38,832 nucleotides of DNA from Hyphochytrium catenoides (Eukaryota; Protista; Hyphochytriomycota): assembly GCA_900088475.1 (NCBI GenBank), contig FLMG01000804.1:1-38832 (forward strand). The letters are read 5' to 3'. Under the pieces are notes generated by a model. It ran no database searches, was not told where the DNA came from, and was given only the letters and a program-made list of their open reading frames with translations. Positions 3,290 to 38,710 of this stretch are shown one piece after another. Each line of letters starts with the position of its first letter. Position 1 is the first letter of the stretch. Made by a program: the position numbers and the translations under genes.

Positions 3290-6200
3290 ATGTCTCTGTT
3301 AAAGGAGATTCCTGACAAGGGTGCCACTGTGGCATGGAGTACGGCCTCCGCTTATCCAAACATCATTGCGGTGGGCTCTAAAGAAGGGGGAGGAGTCGGT
3401 TTTGATAACTATGGAGGGGAACTGGAGCTATACCGCGTAGACTTTGAGAACAACAACCCCAGCCCCGTCAATGCAGGCAGCGTCAAGACTACGGCCCGAT
3501 TTTCCTCCTTGGCGTGGAGCAAAATGAGCAAGCAAAGCGCAAAGTTCCCTTGCGGGATCATCGCAGGAGGTGAGATATGCTTTGGTCCTTGCCTGACGTT
3601 GTAACCACTTTGCTTCCACGCACTGTGTCTCATGCTGCTAGTCGTCCCATCTTCCGTATCTCTTCATCTCGTTCTTCATTGCCTTTGATAAGCTCCAGCG
3701 GGGCCAGGTTGGTCTTCTTCCGCTGTGCCTCTTTGGATACTGCTATTCTCATCTCACCCGGGAATTATATGAAGGGATGTCGGACGGCACTGTCAACATT
3801 TGGGACCCGCTGAAGCTGATGCGCAATGAAGGCGCGCAGTCGCAGCTAGCACGTGTCCAAAGGCACAAAGGCGCTGTCAAGGGATTGCAGTTTAACCCAC
3901 ATCGAGACAGTTCACATCTTCTGGGCTCGGGGGGAGCCGATAACGAGGTTTACATCATGGCGTTGGAACGGCCTGATGCACCGACTATCTTTTCCCCCGG
4001 CGAAGCTGTTAAACACAATGCTGAGGTGAGCTGCGTAGCCTGGAACACGCAGGTAGCCCACATTCTGGCCACCGGAGCTTCGAACGGGATCTGCATGATC
4101 TGGGATCTCAAGCAGAAGAGACCATGGTGCTCTCTCACAGATCCTCATCGCGCTCCCGTCTCTTCGGTGGCATGGAACCCTACAGAGGCCCAGCACATCA
4201 TCACGGCCTCCGAGGATGACCAAAAGCCCGTCATCAGACTGTGGGATCTGCGAAGCTCTACGTCTACGCCTCTGGCTGAGCTAAACGGCCACACGGCAGG
4301 TAGATTTCTGGCTGTTTAGCTGTTATGCCCTCCTCCTTATGTTGGGTCGTTTTCCTGTCCGTCCTCAGTCCCTTTGATCGCGTTGTTCACTTCTTGAGGG
4401 TGTTTCTATCGACTTTCCTCTTCCTAGTCCGTCGTTGCAGCGTCGATGTAGCCTCCGGTGCCATTTCACCAATCTTTGTCTTACACTCTTGTCTTCGCAG
4501 GGATCCTTTCCATCTCCTGGTGTCACTACGACACGGGTTTGCTGCTCTCCTGCGGGAAGGACAACAGAACCCTTCTCTGGGATCTTTTTTCTGGCAAGAG
4601 TATCTTCGAGCTACCGTCAACTGGCACGATGGAGCAGCCACAGGCGCCTGGCGGGTTCTTCGGTGCCGCTGGAGGCGGCCAACGGCGGTATGATGTCCAG
4701 TGGGCCCCTCACATCCCGGCGGTGATCTCCACCTGCTCCTTCGACCGCAAGGTACAAGTGTTTGGCATGGCTGGAGCCGGCAGCAAGACCTCGACGAGGG
4801 CTCCCAAATGGCTACGCCGTCCTTGTGGTGAGTCTGCGAAAATATTCGCTTTGATGGTGTATGTTTGGCAATCCAAGAGTGGTTAGGCACGCCTTTAGGC
4901 TGCTCTGTCACACGTCTTTGGTGCCTCTCTTATCTAGCTTTCAGGTCTAGTACGAGAACGATCACTCTTCCTCACGTACCCCCGACGTTTTCGTTTCGAT
5001 CTTTTCGCTTCTTATAGGTGTCTCCTGGGGCTTTGGTGGCAAGCTCGTATCGTTCTCCAGCGGTCCTGCTGGAAACTCAATGGGCATGCCAAACCCGCAA
5101 GCTATGTCGAAGATGGTGCAGATTAGGCAGGTCATTACGGAACCAGAAGTGGTCGATGGCGCGGTGAAGTTCGAAGAGACCCTAAATAGCAAGGATTTCA
5201 AGGCATTTTGCAAGGATAAAGCGGCGAGTGCAAAGACAGAGCACGACAAGAATGTCTGGAGCTTCATGCAGATACTTTTTGAGAAGGACGCGCGACAGCA
5301 GCTCTTGTTGCAGCTCGGCTTCGACGCTGAGGTGGTAACCAAAGAAGCTGCGAAATATAGTCAGAAGCCTAAAACGCCGGGAGATGCAGCAGCAACCTCG
5401 ACGCCAGCATCTGAAACGGGCTCTGCTACTGGGTCTGAGACAAGAAGTATGGCGGAAGCCTTTGCCCCGTCAAATGGTCCAAGCGGCGCGGACATCTTTA
5501 ATGCTCCTGCGGCAGGAGCGGAAGAGGTGCCGGGGATGACAGAACTGTCGCTCGAGGGTGTTGACTCTAAGCCAGGGGACGGGGAAGCCGATCAGAAGCC
5601 TGCCTCGGACGATAAGAAGGAGGACGCACCCATCGCAAAAGCTATCGAAGCACTCTCTTCCCTCGCCCCTTCTCTCGGGCCACGCAGCCCTGTCCAGGGC
5701 GGTCCAGTGCCAACGTATACGAAGGAATCTGAGGACATGATTAAGCGTGCGCTTCTAGTAGGAAACTTTGAAGCAGCCGTGGACTGCTGTCTGTTCCACA
5801 ATCAGCTGGCAGACGCTCTTCTCTTAGCCACCTGTGGAGGCCCAGAGCTCTGGGCAAGGACGCAGGAGGCCTACTTTGCAAGGCAGCAACGGCCTTTCTT
5901 GAAGCTTGTCTCCGCTATCATCAAGTCAGAGCTAGGACAATTGGTTGCGTCGTCAGACCTTAATAAGTGGAAAGAAACTCTGGCCATTCTCAGCACCTAC
6001 GGCAAGAGTGAGGAGTTTCCGTCCCTGTGTGAGGCACTGGCTAACAGATTGGAAAGTGAACGGAAGGACATCCGTAGCGCCATGCTCTGTTATATGTGCG
6101 CCGTCAACGTTAAGAAGACCGTTGCAGTTTGGGTCAAGGAGGCCGCGCGGTCAGCCACCGTCATTGGCTCCACAGCAGCCTTGCAAGACTTGGTAGAGAA

Positions 6201-7873
6201 AGTCTCCATCTTCCGCCAGGCGCTTTTAGATCAGGGTGACCAGGATCTGGGCGGTGAAGTGGCTCGGCACTTTGCGAACTACGCGGCGCTACTAGCCTCC
6301 CAAGGCCGCGTAGACTTGGCTACCAAGTACGCAATTTTCCAGGACGAGAGCTGTACTTTGCTGAGGGACAGGCTGGAGCAAGCGCAGCAGACGAGTGCTC
6401 CCTCTGCAGGTGGGTGGGGTCAGACTGCAGCAAAACCCCAGCAAGCAGCTGCCACCAACTACGGAACTCAGCAGCCAAGGGCGGGCTATGGTGCTGCAGC
6501 GGCGCCCTCCCCGGTCCCAAGCGCTGCAGCGCCCGCGTATGGTGCTGCAAGTGGAGGGTACGGAGCTCCGGCCACAGGAGCAGTGGGAGGCTATGGCGCA
6601 TCTGCAACGGGAGCCGCGACAGGCTATGGAGCGTATGGGGTTCCTTCCGCAGCAGCGTCTGCGGCAACATATGGCCAGCCTGCAGCTGTACCGCAGCCTG
6701 TCGCTGCAACAGGATATGGAGGTCAGGCAGGTGGAGGCTACGGGACAGGTGCACCAACCTCACAATATGGAGCGGGCTCCTCTTATGGAACAGGGGCCTC
6801 ATACCCTCAGACCTCCGCTTATGCAGCGCCAACTCCGGTCCCTACCCCCGCGGCCCCCTATGGGGCAGCCCCTGCTGCTGCCGCAGGTGGGAGCTTCGGA
6901 GTGTCAACCGCTTCGACCCCTGCTCCTCCATCTTCGTATAGCATGGGCGGCGCCTCAGGCGGCTATGGAGGTCAAGGGTTCGGTGCTTCTGCTTACGGCT
7001 CAGCTCCTGTCCCAACTCCTCCAGTTCCTTCTTCTACACCTCTGGATGCCGCTCGTGCCGCCACGCTCGCAGGAAGAGCACCCTCTTCTGTGCCTGACAT
7101 TAGAGAGGCTAAGAAGGACGGCTTTGTGAGCAGCGTAGGGAATAAGGACTTGGCGAAGAAGTATGGCAATCAGGTTTCTCTGTCTCCGCGGCCAGCGACC
7201 GAGACTTCAGCGGTAGCTGAGGTTCCAGCTCCTCCTCCTCCGCCCCCAGGCGATGTATCCAACGTCGCAAGGGAGAGTATGCCAATCGTCGAAGCTTTCC
7301 GAGGGCTGATCGACCTTCTTGCCAACATTGACCTCTCAGCGGTAAGTAGGTGAAGAGTCTGGAAAGCAGGCATAAACGTGTGGCGTGGAATGCTCGCCAT
7401 TCATTCGCCTCTTCCTATCTTCTCCCTACTGGACACTAGACTTGTACCTCTGTTGTCCCTTTCTGTTTGTTTGCCGCTAAATGTTACTTTGGACGCTCTG
7501 TTCAGTTCTCAGTCAGCGACAGACCTGGTCTAGCTCTCAAAGTTGCCTTAGCGGTGTTTCAACCTCGTCATGAAGACTAAACTTGTCTTGTTTGCACCCT
7601 TCACTTCCCTCTGTTGTTCTACAGCCTGAGAGAAAACAGCTACAGGAGATTGAGAAGAGCCGGGATGCTCTTTTCTCGAAACTAAACTCGAACGCTGTGA
7701 GCCCTGACGTCCTCGCCAAGCTGCTGGAGATGGCACAGCTCTTCGCTGTCAGAGACTATCGTGGAGCCCATAACATCAACACGGCTTTGACCACATCAGC
7801 TTGGGACCAGAACAAGGACTGGCTAAAAGGGACGAAGTTCCTCATCCAGCTTGCACAGAAGAAGAACGTGTAG
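3290..7873 (+). CDS. SEC31: COPII outer coat protein Sec31 (5 exons)
   Basis: Exons are about 3290-3569, 3775-4299, 4501-4827, 5018-7341 and 7625-7873, all GT-AG and phase-consistent. N-terminal WD40 repeats (HKGAVKGLQFNP, IWDLKQKR, IRLWDLRS) are followed by the Sec31 signature APKWLRRPCGVSWGFGGKL and the ACE1 solenoid (IKRALLVGNFEAAVDCC...ADALLLA.CGGPELW). A low-complexity linker and a C-terminal helical domain (RDYRGAHNINTALT...W) complete the protein. Confidence 0.97.
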
Positions 7874-13900: not shown

Positions 13901-14082
13901 TATGAAATATCCTCATGCGTCTTTTCTTCCTCAATCTGCCGCCAGCCAACTGCAGTAGCAAGCTGACCCTATCATGGCGGACACCAGCCAAGAGAAAAGA
14001 CGAGAGCCTCGCAGTCATCGCTTACCGCTTATAGGACACAAGGAGTTCCTTTCGGGTCTAACCAGGAGAAGGAGTGACAAGG

Positions 14083-16286
14083 ATGCTAAAACGTTTTCTA
14101 GCTCTCGCCCTTCTCCTTCTTGAGGGCACTCATGGTTCTACAAAGATATGGAACTCTCGACTTCAGAATTTTGTGGATGTGGAGCCAGAAGACCAGCACA
14201 TTCCTCGCGACCCGGCGGTCAGCCATCTCCGTCCACTCTCTCCGACGCTTCCTAAAGCCGATAATATCTCCTTCTTTATCGGCATTGCTGCCTTCAGGGA
14301 CTCGATAAGGTGTGGGCGCACCTTGCACTCCGCTTTCCATAACAGTACAGGAGATCCTGCTAGAATTTTCATTGGCGTTGTTGATCAGTTGGGCAGTGGA
14401 GAGAAAAGCTGCGTGGACGAGTACTGCGAGTTGGTCAAGAAAGAAGGCATTAGGGAAACAAAGCCTGAGGCATTAGGTGAGGAGTGTCCCTATCGTTCCA
14501 ATGTTAGGACAAAAAGGTTGAAAGCGAAAGACTCTCGGGGCCCAACTGTAGCACGAGCTTATCAACAGGAATTGCTCCAAGATGAAGAATTTTGTTTGCA
14601 GGTGAGATCTGAAATGCTAGGAACCGGGCCACTACCAAGCAGTAGCGAGGCGTTAGGAAACAAAAAGATAGGGATAGATGAGCAAGGACTAGCTTAGGGG
14701 TGGTAGACCACAGGGAAGGAACTGGACTGGAAAGAGAGCATAATCAGAGAATTAACAATTCACTCTCCTTCGCTGTATGCAGATAGACGCGCACTCCATC
14801 TTCGCGAAGAACTGGGATCGCGACATCGTCGCTGACTGGCTCAAAGCCAATAATGAGATGGCTGTCCTTTCTACCTACATTCACGACTGCGATAATGCCT
14901 GGGCGGGGGCGAGCGATACGACACAGCTACCGCATCTTTGTGCAACGACCAGGGCCCCACCGCATGGCATGATCAGGAACGAGGGAGCGTCCAGCATAGT
15001 GGGCGCCAAGAAGCCACAGCTAAGCCACCTCTGGGGCGCAGGTAAAGGGGTCGGCTCAGGAAACGATGGAGGATTAGTTGGAAATGATAGTGACATGGAC
15101 CCCTAGACCTAACATACGTACTAGGAAAGGCCAGAACTCGTTAGGCAACGGCCCAGAGTGCCATAAGCTGAATGTTGGGGAGGGGGAGGAAAAGCAAACG
15201 GCCATAAGCTTGTCCTTACGAATTGTCTGTGTGCTACCTTCCAGGTTTCTCTTTCACAAAATGTCACGCAGAGAGGAGAGTCCGCGTCGACCCCCATACA
15301 CCCTGGATATTTGATGGCGAAGAGTTCTTGCGCGCCATTCGCTTGTGGACCCATGGCTATGATATATATACGCCGTCAACCTTCACCGTCTGCCACGACT
15401 ACAAGCCGGTGCCGTACAGGTGAGACAACTGGATAGGGGCACTAAACGGTCAGAGGAAGTGGAGGGAGAGCAAAAGTAGTATTGCCATTGGGGGCTCTGT
15501 AGAACTTTGAAGCAGAGGAACTTGCGTGGAAGTCTAGCATTATACATTTGTGTCTCCCGGTGACCATTCCTTATCTTCAGATACGACGACCCGGATGAGG
15601 ATCCCAACCGTTTGCATTCGGATCTCGAACTTCTAAAGAGCTCTAACAGAATCAAGAAGATACTTGGTCAGACCTTGGAAGAAGATGGAGAACTATTTGA
15701 GGAGGAGTTGGATCACTTTTTGCTTGGAGATGTGCGGACTAGGGACAAGTACTTTGAATTTTCCGGCATCAATCTTCAAAAGGGACAAGATGCCGACCGC
15801 TGTCACCAATTGTACTGGGTATCTTATGATACCGATCTCGTCTCTTGGCCACTTTTGGGGTATGACAAACCGAAACGCCAACGGCCTCGTTTACGACAGC
15901 ATCAAAACGGAGCAGCGTCTGCTCTCAGGACGGATTATACACAGTGGAAGCTACCGGATTTGACTTTATTAGGAAAGGGTGGAGATAGTACGGCACGAGG
16001 GACGACCAAAGGCGATGGGGAGGCCGTGACTGTATTTGCCGGTATAGGTACATTGCAAAGAGAGGACGTGCTAAGGACAAAGACGGAAGTCAGAAAGCAA
16101 GGTATAGAGGGTCCGAAGGATGAAGACACCTCACAAGAACTGTTCCTTCCTATACTTGACAAACCTGATGCAGTGGAACGGGGGTATATCACATCAGCTT
16201 GCCTCCTGGCACTAGGTGGCACTTTCATAGGGATTGCGATTCTCTTGAGACAGAGAAGAAATAAAACGAACGCGAAGAGCGCTTAG
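14083..16286 (+). CDS. GT60-family (Skp1-hydroxyproline GlcNAc-transferase Gnt1-like / polypeptide GlcNAc-transferase) glycosyltransferase with signal peptide and C-terminal transmembrane helix, 4 exons
   Basis: Exons are about 14083-14601, 14783-15041, 15245-15419 and 15581-16286. Motifs: FIGIAAFRD..C..TL, IFIGVVDQ, SRGP..AR, QIDAH (DxH), WD, AVLSTY, WGAGFSF, DPHTPWIFDGEEF...RLWTHGYDIYTP, LGDVRT. The N-terminus MLKRFLALALLLLEGTHG looks like a signal peptide. YITSACLLALGGTFIGIAILL followed by RQRR looks like a TM helix with a basic stop-transfer. Confidence 0.9.
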
Positions 16287-22844: not shown

Positions 22845-25800
22845 ATGGGCACACGAGAAGCGGAATGGAGTGGACGGACTCCTGCGGTTGTACCGCTACC
22901 TCCAATTGACACTTCTTCTGCTCGAGTTGGTAGGGAAGGACACACTTCCATCTCCAGTAGCCGGAGCATTTCCTCTGATCCGTCACCTCGTCTACGGTAT
23001 AACCTGGATGTTGGACCACAACTCATCTACCCGGCCACAAACGATGTGACTGGTTCACAGGCCACAGAGACCAACAAGTTAGGACTCCCTCCTATCTCTC
23101 AGGATCCCTGCTATCGGTCAGTTCCTGAAAAGGCAGAGAGCGCGAGAAGTGACATTGCTAGCGATAGGAGCGGCTGGCTTCCTTCTTCGCCCACCGAGCG
23201 CCTCAAGTCACAGCCTTCCTCTCCCTCTTCTGCGCTATTTTGCAGAAAACCTAACCCGATCGCTTCATTATCTAGCAACAATGGACAACAGGTGGACAAC
23301 GCCTGCGATCGGAAACCAGAGATCACACTTTCTCCCGCTGCACCGAAATCCCCATACTCTAAGAAATGGCTTTCAAAATATACAAACGGTGCTGGAGGTC
23401 TTCTGGCTTCCGCCCAAGGAAAAGGACGACTAGTGACAGACATTGCGGCAGAGATACTAGACAGAGAAAGTGACCCCGCGAGCAACCTGGCTTTCGCAAG
23501 GGACTTCCAACTTTTGCTACAGAAGCCTGACTCGATAGACAGGGATGGATTGGTCATGCCTAGTGATGCAACTATTGACTCCTGGATATCTATTCGAGAA
23601 GCACTAAAGCTCCAGCTTGGGATAGTCTGTAAGGAGTTAGTTGACAGACTAAACGTCGCTCAGCCCGACTTGCGCGGCCATCGGCAGCTCATCGGCTGCC
23701 TTCGCGAGTTCCACTCATTAGTGGAGAGGTTGAGAATCGCTTCGATAGAGGTGGTGCTGGCCATCCGACAGTGGGAGGAGGAAACTTCACGCTTCGGAGT
23801 TGAAGAAACTGCTCATTTTACTCCACGGGAGAGGGACGAGCCTGATGATGACGATGGACAAGAGATAGCCGACGAAAAAGGGCGTAAAGAGGAAGACGCC
23901 CCTGAAGCTACTCTGGAACGGGAAATTACAAAGGCCGAGACAAAGGCAGGCGCCTCAACGGATGAGCTGTCTAAAGAGTTTGCCATGGGGCTTAGGGAAG
24001 GCATGCAAAACTCTGTATCCTTGCTGTCTTATCTGTGGCAGGGAAAGCCATACGCAGCGAGTATGACCTCGGACCTAGACTTTTTAGAGCATCAGCTACG
24101 AGGACTTAGGGCCCTGATGGACGCGTACAATTCTAATCACAAGCTCAACCCGCCAATAGAGCTACCTTTTCACTGGAAATCTCTCTTGCGGAATCCCTTT
24201 CTAATTCCCTTGACCTTGGATGACATTGCGGCCTTTGAGATCCTTCCCCTTGGCGAAAGAGAACTTGATGTCCTTCACATTAATATATCATGGTCTCAAC
24301 TGGTTGAACTCATGCGCTACCTGATTGAGCAGCGGCGGAAGTATGAGCAGGAGGTCACTGCAAGCTTGACGCAGAAGCAGCGAGAAATTGGTGATGTCAG
24401 TCGGGTCCAGGACAGTCTCCTTACCTCCATGGGCAGAACTTTACAGCTTCCAGTTGGTGCTTCAGAGCTCCGCGCGCTGTCCCTTGTTCATTTTCCTTGT
24501 CGCGGCGCGGTTCTGGTGACTGCTGCAGTGAAACTCATCCTACGCGCCGATCGACCTGAAAACGAAACTGATGTAGACGTTGACCTTGGCATGGATATCA
24601 CTCAGCTGAACTGGAAGTTGTTGAGAAAGTGTTTCAAACATCCGGAAAGCCTTATGGAGAGGGCAGCGCGCTTCGTCTCTTCTGGATGCAGCCTTTCAAC
24701 TGCGAAACTAATGAAGCTCGCGGTGTTGATTGCTCATCCACAATTCACCCCCAACAGTGTGAGGGCTGACTCTCCCACTTTTGCTGATCTCTGCCTGTGG
24801 GTGCTAAGGATTCTTGACCACGCTTGTGGCAGTGTGGGTGGTTATCCTGGGATTGGCCTGCTAATAGAAAAGGAGCTGCGGCTTCTCAAGGAGACAGAGA
24901 GCAGAGAAAGGATAGCAGGAAGCAAAGGGCGACCACTCCACACTCAAACTGAGAGCAGCAAAATGTCACAGATAAGACATGAAGCAGACTTCGTCGAAGC
25001 TATCCGCGAAAAGTACACGAAAATGAAAAAGTTGGCTGACCTCTCTCTCTCTTCCTTAACCAAGACAACACCAAAGTTGACCAAGGACTTCAGAATACTC
25101 CAAATGGCCGAGATGAGGCATCGGAAGAAGAGGCTACTTCTCTTGCAAACAGCTTGCCGACTCCATATAGAGGACAGGCAAGAGCGGGTGGGCCACAGAG
25201 CATTTGTTTCGTCACTCTCCCTTCGGTATCGTCACTGCTACGTCCCAGCCCCAGGATTGCTTCTTCGCCTGTTTGATACTCGAGCGCGACGTGAAGAGTC
25301 TTTATTTCTCCCTTCCGTAATGTGCAACAGAGTTATCGGCGTCAGCCTCGTCCAGCTGCTCCGCGCCTCCCCTGATGAGTACCCTTCGTTCCTTACAAAG
25401 ATCTTGAAAAGCCTGACAGTCACGCGTGGGACCTCTAGGTCGCCAGCTGGAATTTCCTTGGCCCTTATGGCAGATAGCACAGTCTACAAGGACAATGTTC
25501 GAGCACACCGGTCCGCCTCTTCCCCCGCTCATCGTGAGGTCTTCACACCCTTTCTGTTGGGACGGGAGATAAGCAGTGAGAACAAGGTCTTAAGCGTTGC
25601 TTTTGAGGCCAAAGCAGACTGTAACGGAGGCTTCTCCTTATCGTTAGTTGTGTCTGAACCTACAGGAGATGGCGGAATCCTCAGAGAGAACAGTGATAGA
25701 AACCGCTTGCTCTTGACAAGTGAGACCTTACACCTTCTCGTCCTGGACTGCCCTTCTCTGCTACAGCCACCTACAGAGGATGAGAACGATGATCTAAAAA

Positions 25801-28800
25801 TTGCGGCTGAGATCTCCCAGTGGCTCTCTGGACGTCTCTATAATATCCCCAGCCCAGCTGGAGGCCCATCCAGGTTCATTGGTGTCCAGAATGTTGTTAA
25901 CTTGCCCGGTAGGGAAAAGTGGGTTCAAAAAGTAAGGACACACTTAAAGGAGGAAGATGTCTCACTCCTCACGGTTGTTCACGAAGAAAGGCTCCATTTT
26001 ATCCTTCGCTTCCAGGGCCTCTCGAATATGACATCGGATGGGAGCTGGCCGTCGCTGTCCTTCAGAGAAGTTGGAGCGTTAAGTGCAACCCGGGTACCCA
26101 AAAACGAAGAGGAAGAAGTTGTAGAAAAGTATCCTTTTGCGGCAATCAAAAAACTAGTAGACTATGAGAGCCCCGTCCTAATGGACAAAGTCACATCTCA
26201 TCGCTACCTCTTCGAAAGGCTGAGGACGGTGAAAGGACAAAGCCCAAACAACGGAGACGCATCGTCGGAGTCCGTCGCTTTAGATATAGATCGCCGCCTG
26301 TACAACTCCTACCGTCAAATGCGTGGTCAACCATGGATCTTGAGAGTGGAGCTGCTGCGAGACCTTGCCGATGTCGAAAATTTGTCCTTCCCAACCCTTA
26401 GGGTCTCAGCTCGCCTGAAGCCACCCAGATCAGCAGAGCTGGAGAATGGGGAAGAAACCCCACAGACGCCTGAGCCCCCATTGCTAGTTAAAATTATTTC
26501 GGCAGACGACTGCCGCACGCTGCTTTCACAGGTAGAACAAGTTTCCAATTCTTGCGGTACCCACTACCATCTTTTGATCTCAAGATCAAAGCATACCTTC
26601 TAATTGTCTCTCTTCCTTGCATTGGATGTTAAAACTCTACGTCTCTTCACACTTTCCGTTGGACATTCTTGGGATAAGCTCTCTTTCAATCCAGTATCGT
26701 TGGCTAGACTTGCTTTCCTATTTCCTGGCAGGACGGAGTGACACAAGAAGCAGCGGACAACATTCTGTACTCCTTCAACCTCCGGCCACTAGCGGCTTAT
26801 ATATCGAGGAAGATGAAGGTAGTCCTCGATGACAATATGCGGAGACCGGAAGAAAAGAGGGATAATGAGATGGAACCTCGAAGAGGAAGTGGCGTCCAGC
26901 AGTGGCCCAGTTATCGCCTTGAAACGCATCTGTACCGAGAGAGATTTACTTTGCACCTCTTCTTCAACCAAGTACAGGAGGGAGCTGCTATTGGCAGTGT
27001 CGCAATCACTGACACGACGACTCTAAAGCAACTTAGAGACATCATAGCCCGGGAGATTGACTCTGTAAGAAGACTCAAACTCGAATTCTAGTTTGCGTCA
27101 GTTACTTTTCCTTGGTATCCTCGATAACGTCCCCAACGGCTTGCCTTGAAGGTGTTAGTTGATGTTCTCATATAATCGCTCTTCTTTCTCCTTTCCACTA
27201 ATTTGAAGGACATGTTGCCAGAAGAGTTCAAGTTCGCTCATCAAGGAGTCGTTTGCAGCAGAAAGCAGGAGCCTACGAAATTAGCTAGAGCCTTTCTGCC
27301 ATCTCTTTGCCTATTCAATCCCAAGCTCCAGGCAGCCGGAGGAGACTTGTTCCTTGGAGGTTTCCAAACAGTGTTGCACGCGAAAGAAGAGGAAATTCCG
27401 GAAGTAAGTCGAGGGATACAATCGGGTTTAAGTAACAGAGTGAAAGGGCTAAGGCTTTCCCTCATTGCAGATAACAATCATAAGCATCTATGAAACCTAT
27501 CGAGGCGGCTGGAAGGAGGGTGATAAGTTGAAAGCAATGGTTAACGTACAAGACAGCGTGGGCCAGCTTAAGAAGCTCTTGGAAGAGCAGGTAGGCTGAT
27601 AATGGCTATATGAGCTCTCACTATCGAGAAATGAGCTTGCTACTTTGAGTGCTGCCCTTAGTGCTCCTTCATCTTTCCTCGCCAGATGAGCAGTAGCCAG
27701 CGCTTGGTGCCTTCTCTAAGCCATGATTCTTTTAGCTGTCAATGCCAGTCTCCTCTCAACGTCTAGTACATCGAGGTGTGGAGCTTCAAGACGAACGTCC
27801 TCTACAGCATTACGGACTTAAGATGGGCTCCGTCGTGCGAATGAGGCCACCGCTTCCTCCTCAAAAGAAAGTCCGAGTGTTACTGGATGGAAGACTCCAA
27901 CCTTGTGCAACAACAGCTTCGTCGTTTATACCTTCCCACAATCTCACGGTAATACTCGGGCCTATTCTCCGAACCCCCTCCCTTCTCTCGCTCCGTATCT
28001 CCGTCCCCATCTTTTCTGGACCCTTTCTGAAAGTATGCAGCTTCAGCTAAATGAACCCCCTGCTGCTATGCCTCTTCATGGGGGCTAGGTTGCTAGACCA
28101 CCAGTCTATCCGCAGATACTCAGTGTGGGAGATGAAGTGGTGCTTGAGGGCTCGGAACGTGTCGTTCGTAAGGTTCTTGCAATCACAGAGGCATCTGTTC
28201 TTCTCAGCCCCCACCCTGCCAAGGACGGAAAGAACGATAGTAGTCCACAAGAAAGCAGAGGAGGTCAGCCTGACAGTGGGGCGGCAGATGGAGAGGAGCT
28301 GAAAGAGCGAAAGCTTTTCAAGCTAATATGGGAAGCTGAAGACAAGCGTCCAAAGTGGATCAGGGATTTTTGCGATGGTCGAGTACCATTCCATTTTGAA
28401 TATAGAGGCAGTAAAGAGTGTCTCCAGTTCTTTGGTATCAGTACCAGAAAAGAGGAGCTGGAGCAAGCAGTTCATCAAGGTGACGGCCTTCTGCATATGA
28501 GAAGGGAGGTAAGCTGTCACTGTTATCTCCTCCTACCTTTATTCCAATTACCCCTACACTATTCCAGCCGAACTGACGTGGTCTCCCTTCATCTCAATTG
28601 CCAGACGGATAATGGTTTCACTTCTTTGTCATGCATTGTTCTTGTCCACTTACCTGCTTATGGTCCCAAGTTTCGGTGACATTTACTTGCTTCTGTACAC
28701 CTATTGGCAAACCCAGGATTTTGTTAGCAAAGTGGACTTAAAGTGTATCTTGGACGTGGTCTTTACCACTGTAGTGCGTTGGCCGCCCCCTTCTGACGCG

Positions 28801-31800
28801 ATAGAAGGAGGAAAGTTTGCCAAGGTAGAGGTCTATCCCTTGCATGCGGCTTTCTTTTGCGAATTTCGAGCTGACGCCCTTGGCCCTGATCCTCTCGGAC
28901 TCTCTGATATACTCAGCTCGCTAGAGAGTATAACCTCTTGGGTTGTGGGGCCGACCTAGGAACCGGCTATCGTGGGTTGACGAAGAGTGACATGGATCTA
29001 ATCTTCAATAAGGTTAGACCCCCAGGAGAAAGGCGGCTTGACAGGTAAGATAGTACCTTGCCTTGCGGGAAAAGCTACGCTAGATCACACCTCGCATTCT
29101 TAATAGTGGAATTCTCTGAAGCACTGAGAGAGACTTCCTTTGGACGGATCTTTGTACTATGTTTCTCAGAGCTTACCTCAAATTTAGAGTTAACTCCCTG
29201 TAGATTGCTTCTATCATTGACGTACGGATACCCATTAGGGAGGCCTTTGCAAGATCCTTGCCATTTGTGGCGAAGCTTGTGTACCCAAGTATGGGACAAG
29301 AGCTAGCTGTACAGACTCTTGTCTTCGAAAAATTCGCTGCACACAGCAAGACGCTTGCCTGGGTTTGGAACCTGGCCAAAGATTTAGCCATGACAGCTGA
29401 AGGTCATTGAAAAAGATAAAGCTGTCTTAGCTGCATCCCTAGTTCTTTTGATTCTCACCTCCAAAGACTCCTCGGTATCGACTGTCACCCCACGCTTCCT
29501 TCTTTCGGACCCGTTATGACTCTTGGTTGTATATTAGGCCGTAGAAGATCTGCGGCTATCCGGCTGCAGGCCTTTATGCGCATGCACTTTGCTAGTACAA
29601 ATGGCATTATGAACTCCCAGGGCCAGCGTCTGGGGGTAAGCTAGTACTCTATTTATGTTTCTGCGGCACTCTCGCAGGCTCACGGTATCGCTTACTATAA
29701 ATTTAGGGTCTCAAAAGGCAGAGAGATGCGGTGACGCTTGTCCAAGCGATAATGAGAGGCAGGCTAGGACGCTTACGAAAGAAAAGGAAAGAGCAAGAAG
29801 AGGGGAAAAGAGAGCGGGAGGAGCTGTTACGCAGCCAGGCGACGCTAATACAAGCCATGGCCCGATGCTATATCTACAAGAGTCGGTTTAGACGTTACCT
29901 CACGGTATGATCCCTCCGTACTGCCTTCACACCGTCCTCGGTGCAACAATGGCCTCATTAGGGTCAATTACCTCTTTTGCAGCTTCGAAAGGGTCCAGAA
30001 GAAAAGGAAAGGGATATAGCGCGGACGCGTAGAATCCAGGAGATTGCCGTTAGGAAGCGAAATATCGTTCTTTACTCGTGTCGTAGACTGAACAACGACA
30101 TGGTGATGATCACCGTTCGAAAGATGTAGGTCAATAGGTGGGAGATAGACAAACTATCTTCCTTCTGATATGTCTTCGTCTACCAACAACTGACCTTTCT
30201 GTCGCATTGACTTCTGTAGCCCAGGTCTCCTCTTGCAAGTCTATGTGCCCAAGAACTCCGAGACCTTTGATATATCTGTCTCAGAGAACCAGGCCATCTC
30301 CATCTTTCTGGGCTCTCTCCCTACGAAGATGTCAATGAAAGAGTTTGAAGAACGAAGGGATGAACTCATGTACTGCCCAGCCATGGTGGCAGCGTGCTTG
30401 GCCAGGCTGATAATCAAGTACAATGGAAATCGCACCCTCATTTTATTTAGTCGCAAGCGGCAAGTGGAGACTGGACGCTTCGTGCTGCGGAAAGTGGTTA
30501 CTGTGGAGAACGCGCAACTAATCGTTTCAGTATACAGAGAGTCTATGACCTTAGTTTTTGCCGCTCATGATCCCAGGTGATTATCCACCCCCACGGGATG
30601 CGCCTACAACTATGATTTGACTTTCAATTTCTCATCAGGTCCTGCGAAATACTACGCACATCGGTGCTGATCCTGTCCATCGCAGATTGGTACCAACGTT
30701 ATCACCAGGGGCTTACGACCAAACTCCTAAGGCTCCATAACGGAGCCGCAATAACCACATCGACTGTAACTGAAGCTTTCGAGGGTGTAATCACTCCTCC
30801 CAAGACCGCCGTGCAGAAGGCAGTGATATTTTGGCTCTTGAGAAACCTAAAGATACAAGATTCCAGACCTTCAACATCGAAGACGAAAGGTGATACGCGC
30901 AAAGGTGCTGTCGCAGGAGGCGCTGTGGACAAAAAAGCTATCACGTTCACCTTTGAGATACTCCACCAATCGCTGAAGGTCAAGACGATACTAATCCAAA
31001 GTGTTTGGAGGAGCTATACGACGAGACTTGCCGTGCGGAAGCAGTACTTACCTTTACTCCAGAAGGTACTTCTTCTACTTTCTTCCGTGAAGGCTTATTA
31101 TCTTTCTCAGCGGTATCCCTAAAGCTTGACGACATGCAGCGTCCCATCTAACACCGCCTTACGTCTGCATACCTTCTATCATTGTAGGTCTATGACAGCC
31201 AGTCCAAGATGTTCTACTATACAAATATTATGACTGGTTACACTACTTGGTCCAAGCCGAAACTCCTGGGCTCTGAGGACGTACCAGCTCCGCCCGACAG
31301 GTGGGAATGATAACAGCCTATTTTTCTTTTCCTTGAGAGGCTTTGTCACTCGCACTGTATAACATACTTCCTCTTTCCTCTGAGAATTTGAGTGGGTGTG
31401 GGCTTTGCGGTGCGACAATGGCGAGATTGTTTGCCTTAACGAAGCTTCTTCGGTATGTCTGCTATGGACTCTGACTGCCAATCCCTGTTATGTCTGTTCC
31501 AGATGGGAGATGCGCCAAGATGATCAAGGACGAGTTTACTATTTCCATCCGCTTACCGGTCGTTTCAGTTGGATTAGCGAAGAGGAAGCCGCCAGCCGGA
31601 TACAGGTCGACTTTGTCGTTGCTGAGACACTTCATCTGTTTCAGTCCACCACATCCATGCAATTTGTTTTGGCATAAGCAATTATGCCCTGAGAGCCAGT
31701 TAGTCAGTCATTTGACTGTCCTTTCTGTTGTACGGTCCGAATGTGGGTCAACCAGACCACACTCACTAATCTTGACTGTGCAGACCAGGTTTCGCTCCTA

Positions 31801-33099
31801 TTTATCTAAACCTCCGATGCGCATGACTCTATCCGAGCTCGCAAACGCACTCATGATATTCAGAGACGTCGAGGGAAATTATTTAGAAGACCCATCGCGA
31901 ATTCCTTCCGTCGTGAACTACGGTCTATATTTATTAACCTGGGAGGTAGGAGGATGAACCTAGTCTTTACTCCGCTCTCTGCTAGTCCTGGGCGTTTTGG
32001 GATTCCTAGCTTCTGGCCATCGCTTAATTTTGTTCTTTATATCTTTCAATTTGTAACTAACGGATGCGTGGGCTTCATCTCGCTGTTTGGACCATTATAG
32101 AAGCGTTATGATGCCGCCGAGGACCTTCTCAAACAGGCCATGACTTTGTCTCCCCATAATCCGGTGGTATTATACGCCTATTCCGTGCTCTTGCTAGCGA
32201 GTGGTTTGGACAACCGCGAATCTGTTTGGGGCCGCGTGAGAATCATGACAGAAGAAGCCCAAAAGAGCGACGGGAAGAAAGAAAGTTTCCAGGTATGGAA
32301 GGTTTCCTGGCATTAACCTGCAGTCGCCAGCATAGACCCGCTACCCTATCAGTGGTCCACGCTACTCTGATCTATTCCTCTTTCGCATAGCACTTGAGCC
32401 TTTATAACTGAGCATGCTCTGCCTACGTGCACAGATGGCGGAGAAGCTGTTTTTCCGGACATCCGTCATCCTCAATCCAGGCAACGCTACAAGCCTTCTC
32501 CTATACGCTCTAGTACAGCAAGTGGTATATCGAGACTACGATAGTTGTGACAGGTACTACCGCAGAGCCCTCGCATGTGATCCAGCCAATGAAGCTATAT
32601 CACTGGTAGGTTAGAACCATCCTCTTGCTAGCACTTGTTGCCTAAGGGCGCATTTGTTGCCAATCTTACGCCCACTACGTGCCTGCACCGAGACCACAAT
32701 AGATTCATATCATGCTCTGCGATTCCTTCAACTCTTCCACAGAACCTGTCAGACTTCCTAGTCAATCGTCTTCCAGGTGGCTTGTATGAGGGCGGAGGTC
32801 CGCCTGCAGATACTCGGCGCAGAGGACAGCCCATTGAGGGCACAGAAAATGCCGAATGGGTCCAAATGCAGGATCCCACGGCGATGGAAGAACGGTTGAG
32901 TCGCTTTTGGTATAATTGGGCGACACAGGAGTGCCAATGGCATGAACCTGATTGGGAGGCCGAATGGGTTAAGAGGAAACAAAGAGGAAAGGTGAAGAAG
33001 TATTTCGGCCCTTGGGCGGAGATGGAAGACCCTGTGGCGCAGCAAATATTTTACTTCAACAGGCAGACAAAACGGTGCCAATGGGAATACCCTGCTTGA
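22845..33099 (+). CDS. Giant multidomain protein (~2,600 aa, ~20 exons): dynein-stalk MTBD-like, ubiquitin-like, p25-alpha/TPPP, IQ, WW and TPR-like modules
   Basis: A 3.7-kb first exon (22845-26531) can be joined by a phase-consistent chain of GT-AG introns to the stop at 33099. Later exons start at about 26732, 27209, 27471, 27736, 28116, 28717, 28917, 29239, 29538 and 29707, continuing to the last at 32742. Examples of motifs: Ubl (VNVQDSVGQLKKLLEEQ|LSMPVSSQRLVHRGVELQDERPLQHYGL), IQ (AAIRLQAFMR, TLVQAIMRGRLGR, TLIQAMARC, LIQSVWRSY, RIQTRFRSY) and WW (WEMRQDDQGRVYYFHPLTGRFSW, WAEMEDPVAQQIFYFNRQTKRCQWEYP). Confidence 0.85.
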
Positions 33100-33599: not shown

Positions 33600-36500
33600 T
33601 GTGCCCTTCTCACCATCATATCACTTCTTCTCTCCCCGCCATAGGCTGGAACTCTCTCTTGTTTTTCACTAACCCTAACATTTCTGCTTCGCTGACTATT
33701 CTTCTCTTTCTGACTATTCCCTTTATTACTACTGATCTATCTTCTCCGCTCGAAATCCCTCCCTCTGTCCGCCACTTGATGCTCGTCATATTTTTCTTTG
33801 TTGTACTTCTTTCCTCTATCTTTTCACATATTTTGTTAGTGGCCAGGGCACTGTTTTTCTTCCTCCTAGGGGAAGAGAAAAGTATGACGTTGGCCTGTCT
33901 AGAAGTCCTGAGCAGAAGAAACCCTGGCCCTCGGTTCCATCAACGATTCGCAACGGGAAGACTAAACTCTTAGCGCCTTGAGACAACAATTCGGAGCAGG
34001 TATACTACCATTTAGCGGCCTTCCAGACCGTGGATCTTGGAAAAAAAGCATGTGAGGTGAGATCGAGAATAGAAGAAGTAGATGGACGCTTAGTAAAGTG
34101 AAAAAGAGGAAGCGAAGTAGTGACAGCTGCGGCACGAAGAAAGCACAGGCTTCTGAGCAGACCGGTTAATCTCTTATCTTTCTCCAAGTGCAGAAAGGCC
34201 CCAAAATAGTAAACGGAAGGAGAGCAAAATTGATGACGTGTTGTTCCCTCTCTCCCACTCTCTCACTCACTCTTTCTCTCTCTCTTTCTCCTTTTCTTCG
34301 CTTCTCCCTCTTTCTTTTTTAGGTGTCAGAGCCTTGAGCCTTAACAGATGGGCGACCAAGACTCCATAGATCGAATGACACTCCTGTGTTGCCTACTCCG
34401 TAAAGGTATCGCCGAGTCCTCTGATGTTATGTACCGGATTCCCTTGTCGTTAACCAACCGGTGGTACCCGATAGGGAGGATGACAAACTGTATCTCCACT
34501 TCCAACAGACTGGTTAACGAACGCTGAGAGCGACGCCTAAATTGTTGTTTAGTGTTATCAGCCAGGGCAACGTAAGCGGTCAATAACGGGAACAGCCCCA
34601 AGAAGATGACAAGATGCTACACCTCCAAGTAGGAACTAATGATACTTCTAGCCGAAGAGGTTAGAAAGCCTTACACGCAGCCGCGCTGTTGCAGTTCGTG
34701 TCAACGCTGAGGTACGAGTTTACACGAGCGAGCAGCAGCTGGAATGGGGAAAAGAAGTAATAACGCGAAATGCTTCTGCCTGGGGAAAGGAATATGGAGA
34801 GACAACAGCGAGAGCATAATCGACGGCTAACTCTAATGGGACGAAAAGACATAAACAGTAGATGGAGAAGGAAGAAGACGAAGAGAGGAGAGCGGAGTTG
34901 CAGAGAGAAAAAGACAAAGTCATCGCAGAAAAGGACGTCGATTAGGAAGGACTGACGAAGAAAGGAGTAAAAACTGCCACAAGGAGGAGGAGCCCAGCTG
35001 GGGGAACGATACCAACGGCAATGATAGAAGAGAATAAGTGTGTAAGAACGCAAGAGAAAAGAACCTACCTATAAGCTAAAAAAGAGGGAAAGAGTAACAA
35101 AACCGGAACTTCCACGCAGGAAGGAATGAGGACGAGGAATAAAGATCCGAGAAGGCGAGAGAGGGAAATGAGAAATCGAGTGAGATATTGATGAAAGCAG
35201 GATGACTTTTAAAGTCTAGAATTCTCAGGATAAGGGGAGCGGTATATCCGAGAAAGATCCCCTATCGTACCGTCCGCAAAAGCGGGTTGTGAGGCATGAA
35301 CTAGGTAATCCGGCAAGTGGTCTCCTAGCCCACCGCTAACTCCACAAACAGCTAAAGCAGTCTCTTATGGCCGGAAAGTGTAATCGGTCTTCCTTTCGTC
35401 TCATTTCTCCAGTGACTTCTACTAGCCCCTGCATTCGCGGAGACACAAAAATGGGCAAAGAAGAGAGAACAAAAAGGCTAAGAAGGAGAAGATGGAGCGA
35501 GACGAAATAGCAGTCTAACGCAGTGTGAAAGAGGAAGAGATATGGGAGCATGGAAGTGAGAATTATAGAGGCGATAGAGAGGAAAGAAATTGAACAAATA
35601 ACGCGTGAGTTACAAAGAGACAAGGGCGGAAGCGAATAAGTTGTATCAACGTGAACGGAATAGGTGGTGCAAGTAACAAATGACAAGGACGGTCCGAACG
35701 AGTAAACGAGAGAAGGCGACAGATCAAAAGAGTAGGAGAGATGAAAAAGAGTCAGATGTGATGTGAGGTAGACGTGTGACCTCGACAGGAGGGACCAGAA
35801 AAACTGATTTTCGAAAGGAACAGGTCGCCGAAGAGAAAAACTGGCGTCAAAGAGCATAAAGGAAGGGTAGAAGACGTTGGGAAAGAGCGAGTGATGCTGA
35901 CATGGGTAGAGGAGAGAATAGGAAGACGGTATAAAAAGAGACACAGGGAAGACACGGAGGATGCGCCACGGCAATGGGCCCAGAAGAGAGGGAATGAAGG
36001 TAATTGGGAATAGGGAAAGAATGAATAAGAAGAGAGATATGACCTGGGAAATAGGGAAAGGAAAGAGAAGGACCAGAACCTGAAAAGGCAAGAAAGGTGA
36101 CAGAAAAGAAATTATGTGCTGCTCCTCCTTGTATGAGAATGGAAGTTAAGGACAATTAAGGGACTTAGGTAAAAAAGGTCTAGTTGCCTAGACAAAGGCG
36201 GTAGTGACAGAGAGAAAAATGAGGGAAGTGAGAAGGGAGTAGGAAAACAAGGAAGTAGAATCATTAGAGGTCAAGGCATAGGCGAAAACAAACAAGAACA
36301 ACACTAGGATATAGAAGGAAGAAGGAAAGGCGGGACGGGGCAGATAGGTTTGGATGAGGAAGATACTGCAGGGAGATAATGAAAAAGAGAAGAGAGAGCA
36401 AGAGATTGGACAAACAAAAAAGATAGCGTAACAATACAAAGAGACGATAAAGGGTTGTGCTACTTTTAAGTCGCCCAGCTACCATCACGCCCATCTCTAA

Positions 36501-37150
36501 TTATTGTATGACCTATGTTGCTGGGTGGGTAAGCATGGCACATGTCCGTCCTCGCTAAGGAAAGGCGATCCTGATACTTGGCCCGTGTTAATAGCCTGAG
36601 TGGGCGTCACAAGTGGCACCGCTTTTCCACATCCTCCAATAGAAACAAAATAACAACACCCCCAAAACTATGGGTTTTGCCGTAGCATGGGCGTAGAAGT
36701 GGCAAACCCTTTATGTGATTGAGAGGCAGAGCGTACAGAACGTTGACAGTAATTAGCCAGGACGAGAGGAAGGGCGGACCGAAGTTGACTGAACCGTTAT
36801 TGAAGAACGGATGACGTGTGTGCAAGAGAAACTACTGAGAGAGGCAAGATTGGGGCAGGTGTTTGGTGATGGGTGATATGTATGACGTGGGAAGCAGTGA
36901 GGATAGTGGAAAGAAGCCTTAGGAGGAACGAAAAACAAACCAGACCAAAAACGACAGCAGAAGCCCAACAGGGGAGAAAGTAGGAAAAAGTAACAAGGAA
37001 AAGGGCTGAATGGAGAGGCAAAGGGAATGAGAAGAGGGTAGAACATCAACAGGCCATGGGAAGTTGAAGTATGGGATAGGGTTCAGATAAATAAGGCAAG
37101 TCAAAAAAGAGGCTGGACCAAAAATCACCATAAAATAGTAAGCATCTGCA
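33600..37150. other. Non-genic mosaic of strand-biased purine (GA) and pyrimidine (CT) tracts with short mixed blocks; possibly decayed gene or element fragments
   Basis: CT-rich on + at about 33600-33870 and 34245-34320. GA-rich on + at about 34740-35210, 35430-36450 and 36830-37140. No recognisable intact protein. Confidence 0.5.
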
Positions 37151-37159
37151 ATGAAGAAT

Positions 37160-38710
37160 ATGCGTTTAGGGCTACGACTAGGTCTGTGGGTTAGGCTTTT
37201 AGACACCGTAGTAGAGGTTAGAGACCGACTTAAAGTTTACGGCAGCTGTAGGCGGCGCGAACTAGGAGGCGGTTCGGTAAAAGCTAGTAAAGCTTAGGGC
37301 AACGATTTTAGGTAGCAATATACCCCGGGAATTCGAGCAGCATGGTGTTACCGTGGGATAGGGCAGTGGATTAGAGAGTAGGTGGGGAGGTTAAGTGCCC
37401 TCGGTTAGCGCAGGATTCAAGGATCTCATTACATGATACAAGGGAGGATAAGAGGATGGAGAGCAAAAAATGTAGGTCTCTAGAAAGAACGGTAAAGGAG
37501 AGAAAAAGAATTCTGAAACAAATGAAAACTGCTGCATTGGCCGCGAGTTATGGCAGAAGATTAAGACAGGGCGTTATGCCAACGGTGGTGGCAGCGGCTT
37601 ATCGCAAGGGTCATGACAGAGGTTATGGCACCAAGTTGTGGCAGTGGATTATGGCATCAGGCTTAGGGTTAGTGTTCATTGCAGCAAGCTATGGAAGTGG
37701 ATTATCGCAGCAGAATTTCGCAGCGGGCTATGGCGATACGTTATGGCTGATGTTTATAGCAGCGGGTTATATGGCAGCGGGTTAAGACAGTGGATATGGT
37801 CGAGGATTATGGCGGCGGGTTATGGCAGCAGGTTTTGGCAGCAGGATTTGGCAGCGGGTTAGGGCAGCATATCATGGCAGCAGACGATGGCAGTGAGTTA
37901 TGAATGCGGGTTATCCAGGACGTCGATGACAGTGGGTTATGGACGTGGGTTATGGCAAGGCGTAACGGTGAGTTAGGGCAGCTCGCGTAAGGGTTAAGGC
38001 GGCGTGTTAGGGTTATAGCGGCGGTTAAGGGCAGCGGCTATGGGTAGCGGGTAACGGTAGGGGTTAAGGGCGGCGGGTAAAGCTCAGGGGATAAGGTAAT
38101 GGGTTCGGGCAGCCATTTAGGGCAGCGTTTAGGGCTGCGGTTCAGCGCAGCAGCTTCGGGTAGCGCTTAAGGACAGGGGGGTAAAGTTAGTGTTAGCGTT
38201 AGGGAAAGGGCAGGGGGTTACAATGAGGGTAAGGGCAGCTTGTTAGGGCAGCGTGTTAAGGCAGCTTGTTAGGGCAGCGTGTTAGGGCAGCGTGTCAGGG
38301 CAGCGTGTTAAGCTAGTGGTAGCGTTAACTAAAGAGCAACGGGTTAGAGGGTTAAAGTAAGAGCCGTGGGTTACGACGAGGGTAAGGGTAGCGTGTTAGG
38401 GCAGAGTGTTATGCCAGAGTGTTATGACAGCGAGTTATGGTAGCGTGTTATGGCAGCATTTTAGGGCAGCGTGGTAGGGCAGCGTGTTAAAGCAGCGTGT
38501 TAGGGCAGCGTGTTAGAGAGGGTGATAGGCAGCGTCTTAAGTAGGTATTAGCGTTAGGGAGAGGGCAGCGAGCTAGAGGGTTCCAGTAAGGGTAGGGGAA
38601 TAGGATAAGGGTAAGGGCAGCGTGTTTGGGCAACGTGTGAGAGGAGCATGCTAGGGCAACGTGTTAAGTTAGTGTTGGGTTGGGAAAAGAGAAACGGCGG
38701 TTAGAGGTAC
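37160..38710 (+). repeat. Degenerate telomere-like (TTAGGG-containing) 13-bp satellite, probably subtelomeric
   Basis: Units GTTATGGCAGCGG dominate about 37545-37960 and GTTAGGGCAGCGT/G dominate about 37970-38665 (e.g. gttagggcagcgtgttagggcagcgtgt at 38268). The G-rich strand points towards the window end. Confidence 0.88.

Follow-up and report, generated by a model that had tools for sequence, protein, structure and literature searches.

Gene structure and reading frame

The window analyzed here is a 38,832-nt stretch of DNA from Hyphochytrium catenoides (contig FLMG01000804.1), and the subject of this study is a gene of about 10 kb on its forward strand, for which a protein combining a dynein-type microtubule-binding domain (MTBD) with several binding modules is predicted. 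The exons were traced by eye and the phase arithmetic was scripted. An earlier note on this DNA had proposed a single phase-consistent reading frame of about 20 exons, and such a frame was indeed recovered; it consisted of 21 exons with GT-AG borders at all 20 introns and a coding total of 7,794 nt (2,597 codons and a terminal TGA) without any internal stop. Fifteen of the junctions were in phase 0, and the five of non-zero phase all matched. The sizes of 18 introns fell between 62 and 208 nt, the other two being of 39 and 50 nt. Exon 1 lies within a 1,252-codon open reading frame (ORF), referred to as ORF1, and encodes 1,229 residues of it. The coordinates of all features are collected in Table 1.

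A 3-periodic Markov coding score was calculated along the gene, with the coding model built from long ORFs found elsewhere in this genome and the non-coding model from introns 2-20 and the flanks, intron 1 being kept out of training. In frame, 17 of the 21 exons scored positive and all 20 introns scored negative, the untrained intron 1 included. It was also observed that a ubiquitin-like (Ubl) domain (exons 4 and 5), the first WW domain (exons 15 and 16), one IQ motif (exons 17 and 18) and a TPR (exons 18 and 19) were completed only through splicing. Because of the matched phases, the GT-AG introns, the Markov scores and these motifs completed by splicing, we judged the coding frame to be real. 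On balance, the locus probably represents a single nuclear gene, rich in introns, from a stramenopile with flagella; its product would be a multidomain protein of roughly 2,600 residues that has neither a motor nor an enzymatic domain.

Table 1. Features of the 21-exon gene; positions are those of the window
Feature	Position	Strand	Evidence or remark
Gene	22845-33099	+	21 exons; TGA at 33097-33099
Exons 1-7	22845-26531, 26732-27064, 27209-27403, 27471-27590, 27736-27948, 28089-28508, 28717-28824	+	
Exons 8-14	28917-29044, 29084-29153, 29204-29402, 29538-29635, 29707-29904, 29983-30125, 30220-30576	+	
Exons 15-21	30639-31065, 31188-31300, 31503-31605, 31784-31945, 32101-32292, 32435-32605, 32743-33099	+	
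Junctions of non-zero phase	29044|29084, 29402|29538, 30125|30220, 30576|30639, 31300|31503	+	
ORF1	22845-26603	+	1,252 codons
N-terminal helical block	23370-23627	+	Conserved; KYT.G..LL..AQ.KGR..TD.AAEI ... IDSWISIREALK
Family N-block	24030-24221	+	YLWQGKPY..M.SDLDFL ... NPFLIP; colinear with the MTBD match
Divergent dynein-type MTBD (predicted)	24465-24821	+	Helices on both sides; no AAA motor
Intron 1	26532-26731	+	200 nt; CAG|GTAGAA donor; polypyrimidine tract and CAG acceptor
First ubiquitin-like fold, as claimed earlier	26930-27330	+	Across intron 2; hydrophobic strand and helix pattern only
Ubl domain	27471-27843	+	Exon 4 and start of exon 5, split by intron 4
Short p25-alpha/TPPP-like segment (probable)	28800-29290	+	Exons 7-10; GGKFAK | ...SDMDLIFNKVRPPGERRLD | ...EFSEALRE...
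IQ motif, exon 11	29546-29593	+	Pfam IQ
Two IQ motifs, exon 12	~29728-29787 and 29839-29892	+	Pfam IQ
Region without assigned fold	30220-30900	+	Exons 14-15, between the IQ clusters; ~220 residues
IQ motif, exon 15	30985-31032	+	Pfam IQ, 17.3 bits, E 0.0039
WW1	31191-31259	+	Pfam WW, 21.7 bits; without the first Trp
WW2	31504-31572	+	Pfam WW, 30.0 bits
IQ motif, exons 17-18	31588-31810	+	AASRIQ spliced to TRFRSYLSK, phase-0 junction; by eye
TPR repeats, exons 18-20	31900-32605	+	TPR_19, 28.9 bits (cut-off 25); TPR_17, 20.2 bits
WW3 (degenerate)	32905-32949	+	Pfam WW, 14.4 bits
WW4	33007-33093	+	Pfam WW, 31.8 bits; followed by the TGA

A predicted dynein-type MTBD in exon 1

Pfam and PDB searches of the gene were made exon by exon, and the searches of its own genome covered 61.0 Mb in 4,759 records. 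When residues 461-720 of ORF1 were searched with phmmer, four PDB sequence matches were obtained (best E 0.019), each of them a dynein heavy chain and each precisely at the MTBD. In its own genome the same region gave weak matches to a 3,299-codon dynein ORF and to a 996-codon ORF (L008, contig C1946), a paralogue with which ORF1 shared two colinear blocks in BLASTP, the MTBD (2e-6) and the N-block upstream of it (1e-4). Many dynein heavy-chain loci were present in this genome, consistent with a flagellate; SRS, DCX and alveolin gave no match in it and AP2 only one, and an apicomplexan host was rejected. An hhalign comparison of ORF1 with eight own-genome dynein MTBDs returned a probability of 85.8% (E 5.4e-6). 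With a two-row profile of ORF1 and L008, 47 of 49 PDB matches were dynein (best 3.8e-11), isolated MTBD structures being among them.

The fold was modeled with AlphaFold2 (AF2) using a 14-row alignment of ORF1, family members and own-genome dyneins, and the MTBD region was obtained with a pLDDT of 85.4 and a pTM of 0.76; a single-sequence run over residues 470-760 was unusable (pLDDT 42). The best 36 Foldseek matches of the model were all dynein stalk or MTBD structures, and VIA-align superposed it on dynein MTBDs with Z 10.4-14.3 and a root-mean-square deviation (rmsd) of 2.3-4.2 Å over 113-146 residues. When 48,161 chains were scanned in an unbiased manner, nine MTBDs ranked first with Z up to 13.5, the best seven of these top nine giving an rmsd of 2.2-2.9 Å over 111-127 residues, and unrelated folds reached at most 5.7. 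Because a paralogue passes the Pfam MT family, the profiles match solved structures and the fold model is confident, we regard the module as a genuine homologue of the dynein MTBD, as judged from sequence profiles and a predicted structure. The earlier note had placed a dynein MTBD-like module at 24465-24822; the position proved exact, and both profile and structure matching hold.

The likeness to the dynein stalk tip (PF12777 "MT"; structures 3err, 5ayh, 6l4p and 2rr7) extends to the six-helix fold, a conserved Trp, an F.P motif and an S.A..LC.WV motif, and the long helix ahead of the module aligns with helix CC1 of the dynein stalk. Unlike dynein, the protein lacks an AAA+ ring and a linker, and in place of the long antiparallel stalk it has only a short flanking helix; an acidic insert of 10 residues precedes the conserved Trp of its MTBD, and the domain is set within a non-motor multidomain protein. 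No AAA+ motor module or linker was detected, Pfam being silent on the 1,252-aa ORF and reporting no such domain in the downstream exons, in agreement with the non-motor nature claimed earlier.

A family of motor-less MTBD proteins

The paralogue is located at G000:C1946:28821-33958 (L008, L009, L012) as a 996-codon exon, and its match to Pfam MT (E 3.8e-16, 59.5 bits) covers only profile positions 98-209, with no AAA domains. A word search with L008 in ENA, Logan and JGI assemblies yielded four further relatives (P0002-P0005), all single ORFs of 778-1,066 aa, whose Pfam MT matches (E 2e-13 to 4e-21, 50-76 bits) are confined to profile positions 101-208. An N-block with the consensus NY..KM.SDL.FL ... 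NPFMMP stands upstream of the MTBD in L008 and in all four of these relatives. The N-block of our gene matched weakly (BLASTP 0.005 against P0002; hhalign against the family E 1e-4, probability 58%), and its MTBD matched P-set relatives with BLASTP E-values of 6e-6 and 8e-6 and the family with an hhalign probability of 87.4% (E 3.7e-6). Two of the relatives, P0003 and P0005, also carry an IQ motif above the cut-off (21.6 and 24.8 bits) in the tail of the same uninterrupted ORF as the MTBD. To judge from these ORFs, the pairing of an MTBD with IQ on a single polypeptide is a conserved design; an IQ motif C-terminal to the MTBD is common to the family and to our gene, for the latter only if exon 1 joins the rest. 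Since the relatives combine N-block, MTBD and IQ, the gene appears to be a diverged and greatly extended member of a motor-less MTBD family, its MTBD being much more diverged than theirs.

The conserved N-terminal helical block of ORF1, which lies further upstream, matched a 107-aa metagenome fragment (P0001) with E 1e-5 in the exhaustive search and 1.5e-11 in BLASTP. Nothing useful came from a metagenome scan with this block, nor did a word search with ORF1 or the atlas look-ups give a useful orthologue.

Three observations on relatives and neighbors were made in passing. P0003, P0004 and P0005 (L022:10001-12697; L023:3688-6888) share a strongly conserved domain after the MTBD, RTSPWTF..VTYFVSFFLEQ..LSIKLYEPMSSVESQ, without any Pfam match; this "TSPWTF...LYEPMSSVESQ" domain was not detected in ORF1 (hhalign probability 0.1%), and it is apparently missing from L008 and P0002 as well. 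A 585-codon open frame elsewhere in the genome (L021, G000:C4384:357323-357496) matched only the family N-block (E 4.8e-4) and may be a third paralogue. Finally, the paralogue is followed by an ORF of a SERCA-type ATPase at 36926 on G000:C1946.

Modules encoded downstream of exon 1

The earlier note had also listed two ubiquitin-like folds, about five IQ motifs, four WW domains and TPR-like helices for the downstream exons. Both the IQ and the WW counts stood. Pfam IQ (cut-off 20.3 bits) gave exon 11 a score of 18.1 bits and exon 12 one of 20.8 bits, with two stretches matched in the latter; together with the motif in exon 15 and the one formed by splicing, the total comes to five or six, two IQ-like motifs being called by eye. 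Two of the four WW domains exceed the cut-off of PF00397 (26.9 bits), and the TPR-like helices were borne out by the TPR_19 match (Table 1).

The ubiquitin-like folds fared unequally. The second was recovered by the Pfam ubiquitin family PF00240 on exon 5 alone (E 9.5e-7, 28.9 bits, cut-off 25.4, profile positions 34-67), and for the first (26990-27270 in the earlier reading) neither exon gave a Pfam or PDB sequence match. ORF1, exons 2-3 and exons 14-15 were examined for a repeated beta-grasp-like module, and no pair rose above shuffles (best z 2.7). In having a Ubl domain followed by an IQ motif, the protein resembles, by description, IQUB, a radial-spoke protein of the flagellum, which is much smaller and is not known to carry an MTBD, WW or TPR.

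A p25-alpha segment was expected as a second microtubule-binding-type module. The only Pfam match of exon 8 was p25-alpha (PF05517), the domain being split over three to four exons that were searched singly. In the flanking exons, GGKFAK and EFSEALRE fit the p25-alpha consensus by eye, and a PDB search with exon 8 found nothing. A short p25-alpha/TPPP module is therefore graded as probable on these sequence matches, so that of the two microtubule-binding-type modules claimed earlier the dynein MTBD stands firmly and the p25-alpha segment, being sub-threshold, weakly. As a separate observation, a 2,490-codon frame convergent to the paralogue (part of it at L003, G000:C1946, ~44179-47364, - strand) encodes 19 or more EF-hands (EF-hand_7, E 5e-132) in a giant Ca2+-binding array, and a p25-alpha match (E 4e-20) overlaps this array.

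For the region between the IQ clusters, no significant match was obtained for exons 14-15 in Pfam, in the word search (exon 15) or in the atlas. Exons 6 and 14 have no own-genome paralogue, and exons 6 and 14-15 are without detectable relatives.

Alternative explanations

Several observations weigh against a genuine MTBD in a single long gene, and they have to be set against the evidence that carries this reading. As regards the MTBD, ORF1 alone misses Pfam MT (cut-off 24 bits) and matches no Pfam family at E <= 0.1; an exhaustive HMMER search with residues 53-1252 against 1.84 billion representatives recovered only the 107-aa P0001 fragment; the "PP" of dynein helix 1 is FPC in this gene; and the AF2 alignment contained dynein MTBDs, which makes the fold match in part dependent on the sequence evidence. 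Since middling Z scores are common for helical bundles, and the PDB E-value of ORF1 by itself is poor, one could suppose a chance resemblance of a small helical bundle in a protein unrelated to dynein. We consider this very unlikely, because every PDB match falls on the MTBD of a dynein heavy chain, two blocks run colinear between the gene and a paralogue that scores above the Pfam MT cut-off, both hhalign comparisons are significant, and the unbiased structure search is headed by nine MTBDs with unrelated folds far below. A different doubt concerns the p25-alpha exons. The PF05517 match, over profile positions 37-59, has a score of just 13 bits (E 0.12) against a cut-off of 22.6; the 70-nt exon 9 scores as non-coding (-9.3) and is accommodated only by the 39- and 50-nt introns, which are far shorter than all the others; and exons 8 and 9 share one frame, parted by a single TAA inside the in-frame 39-nt intron (29045-29203 region). 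As the genome comes from a heterozygous diploid and is assembled only to draft level (PMC5795050), the gene might be decaying or mis-assembled here, with no full-length protein of such architecture being made. Against this, about 4 kb of downstream exons are open, phase-consistent and domain-bearing, and by splicing 29012|29204 instead, which keeps the phase, exon 9 would be bypassed and a full protein still obtained, so that we rate decay or mis-assembly as improbable; the 39-nt stretch might be a genuine but very small intron, a fault of the assembly such as a base error, or a cassette that is alternatively spliced.

The more serious alternative is that two neighboring genes were wrongly fused, namely a motor-less MTBD gene of one exon, closed by the TAA at 26601-26603, and a second gene with the Ubl, p25-alpha, IQ, WW and TPR modules, whose start would be the ATG at 26813. 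ORF1 does have its own stop 70 nt past the proposed donor. The paralogue and the relatives are of just 778-1,500 aa and carry no Ubl, p25-alpha, WW or TPR, so a gene end after ORF1 is conceivable, and stramenopile proteins of 900-1,500 aa with p25-alpha, IQ and WW exist separately (PMC3498115). Moreover, the searches made turned up no orthologue spanning the exon 1/exon 2 junction or the whole protein, and the C-terminal exons tried gave no relatives (metagenome scan with the last exon, word search and atlas). The junction itself argues for one gene. The ORF1 tail past the donor (26532-26600, 69 nt) scores -15 bits/100 nt, below 99% of the in-frame exon-1 windows, and the head of exon 2 (81 nt ahead of its first ATG) is open and scores +5.6 in frame; an intron-like tail and a coding-like head therefore favor one gene. 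The donor and acceptor of intron 1 are equal in quality to those of the other 19 introns, and the 200-nt gap fits the mean intron length of 208 bp in this genome (PMC5795050) and is too short to house a 3' untranslated region, a promoter and a 5' untranslated region; the stop of ORF1 and the first ATG downstream of it lie only about 210 nt apart. As judged from splice and coding-potential statistics, exons 1-21 are probably one gene, and a wrong fusion of two genes is unlikely, though less so than decay or mis-assembly.

Comparison with described proteins

Multidomain p25-alpha/IQ/WW proteins had been expected in stramenopiles, and they are indeed listed in silico by Orosz (2012), whose entries, 900-1,500 aa long, combine a single short p25-alpha domain with a B-box and IQ, and sometimes with WW (Ectocarpus CBJ49059 and CBN75312, Phytophthora XP_002905233 and EGZ26181; PMC3498115). 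They resemble our gene in the incomplete p25-alpha and the IQ motifs (and WW in CBJ49059) and in belonging to flagellated stramenopiles (PMC3498115). No MTBD, Ubl or TPR has been reported for them, the comparison with the gene being made by description only, and zf-B_box, unlike in these proteins, had no match in the exons searched by Pfam. In the literature searched, we found no description of the MTBD, IQ, WW, TPR and Ubl combination, nor of a dynein MTBD outside dynein or in a motor-less protein. The gene is not an isolated oddity, as the paralogue and the relatives share its N-terminal half.

The structural scan also pointed to chains from other lineages. Chain L of the Toxoplasma gondii intraconoidal-microtubule structure 9ya2 (residues 1207-1457) matched the MTBD model with Z 8.4 and an rmsd of 3.3 Å over 121 residues, 9fqr chain Xl from bovine sperm (residues 1348-1491) with Z 8.9, and 9e5c chain 2e from the Trypanosoma brucei axoneme (residues 153-414) with Z 5.6; all three are microtubule-bound, and their residue numbering is unfit for dynein heavy chains. 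From its length and the description in the paper, 9ya2 chain L is probably ICMAP2, which was reported to have "no recognizable domain" and to tie two microtubules together (PMC10774369, PMC12819142). Like the model, it shows a globular helical domain in a long non-motor protein, here seen on the microtubule lattice, and is thus a precedent for the placement of an MTBD-like domain on a microtubule in a protein that is no motor (PMC12819142). It differs from the gene in lineage and domain context, and no sequence similarity to it was detected among the profile-versus-PDB matches.

Proposed function

The non-motor architecture proposed earlier was recovered essentially as read, with MTBD, IQ, WW, TPR and at least one Ubl, the p25-alpha part being weak. 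From the properties of these domains, the MTBD, and perhaps the p25-alpha segment too, would passively hold the protein on microtubules; the IQ "necks" would bear calmodulin or centrin-type light chains, and the scaffold could in this way be Ca2+-sensitive; and the WW, TPR and Ubl modules may dock proline-rich and other partners. The net result would be an anchor or cross-linker of microtubules, passive, without motor activity and possibly tuned by Ca2+/calmodulin, with the flagellar apparatus or cytoskeleton of the zoospore as a plausible location.

A wider proposal is possible but falls short of probable, namely that the dynein MTBD has been reused without its motor as a passive anchor across an unrecognized class of scaffolds, with the present gene as a Ca2+-switchable cross-linker of the hyphochytrid flagellar apparatus that would couple the MTBD anchor to a TPPP-type tubulin-binding module via the IQ necks. 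The fold matches in the Toxoplasma conoid, bovine sperm and the trypanosome axoneme suggest that such a class perhaps extends beyond stramenopiles. As the literature treats the dynein MTBD as a motor part, a foot-only family would, if true, be a new type of microtubule-associated protein, and it would represent a natural experiment on how an MTBD behaves without ATP-driven affinity switching. The gene described here is the most elaborate member seen, combining the MTBD with IQ, WW, TPR, Ubl and probably TPPP, and is a testable candidate for Ca2+-dependent microtubule organization in a single-flagellum stramenopile.

Other features of the window

Upstream of the gene, a Sec31-like gene was found at 3777-7353 (+), in which WD40 exons are followed by a TPR_Sec16 exon (Sec16/Sec31 ACE-type, E 3e-8) with a long Ala/Gly/Tyr/Pro-rich tail. 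An exon of a GlcNAc glycosyltransferase (PF11397, E 2.7e-13) with an N-terminal signal-like stretch is located at 14074-14697 (+). The segment at 35000-38540 has a strong purine skew, with a GC skew of 0.32-0.39, and closes with tandem arrays of a degenerate 13-nt unit, TTATGGCAGCGGG at 37754-37914 and AGGGCAGCGTGTT in 24 copies at 38232-38539. Microsatellite-like CT/GA low complexity was common at other examined loci of the same genome.

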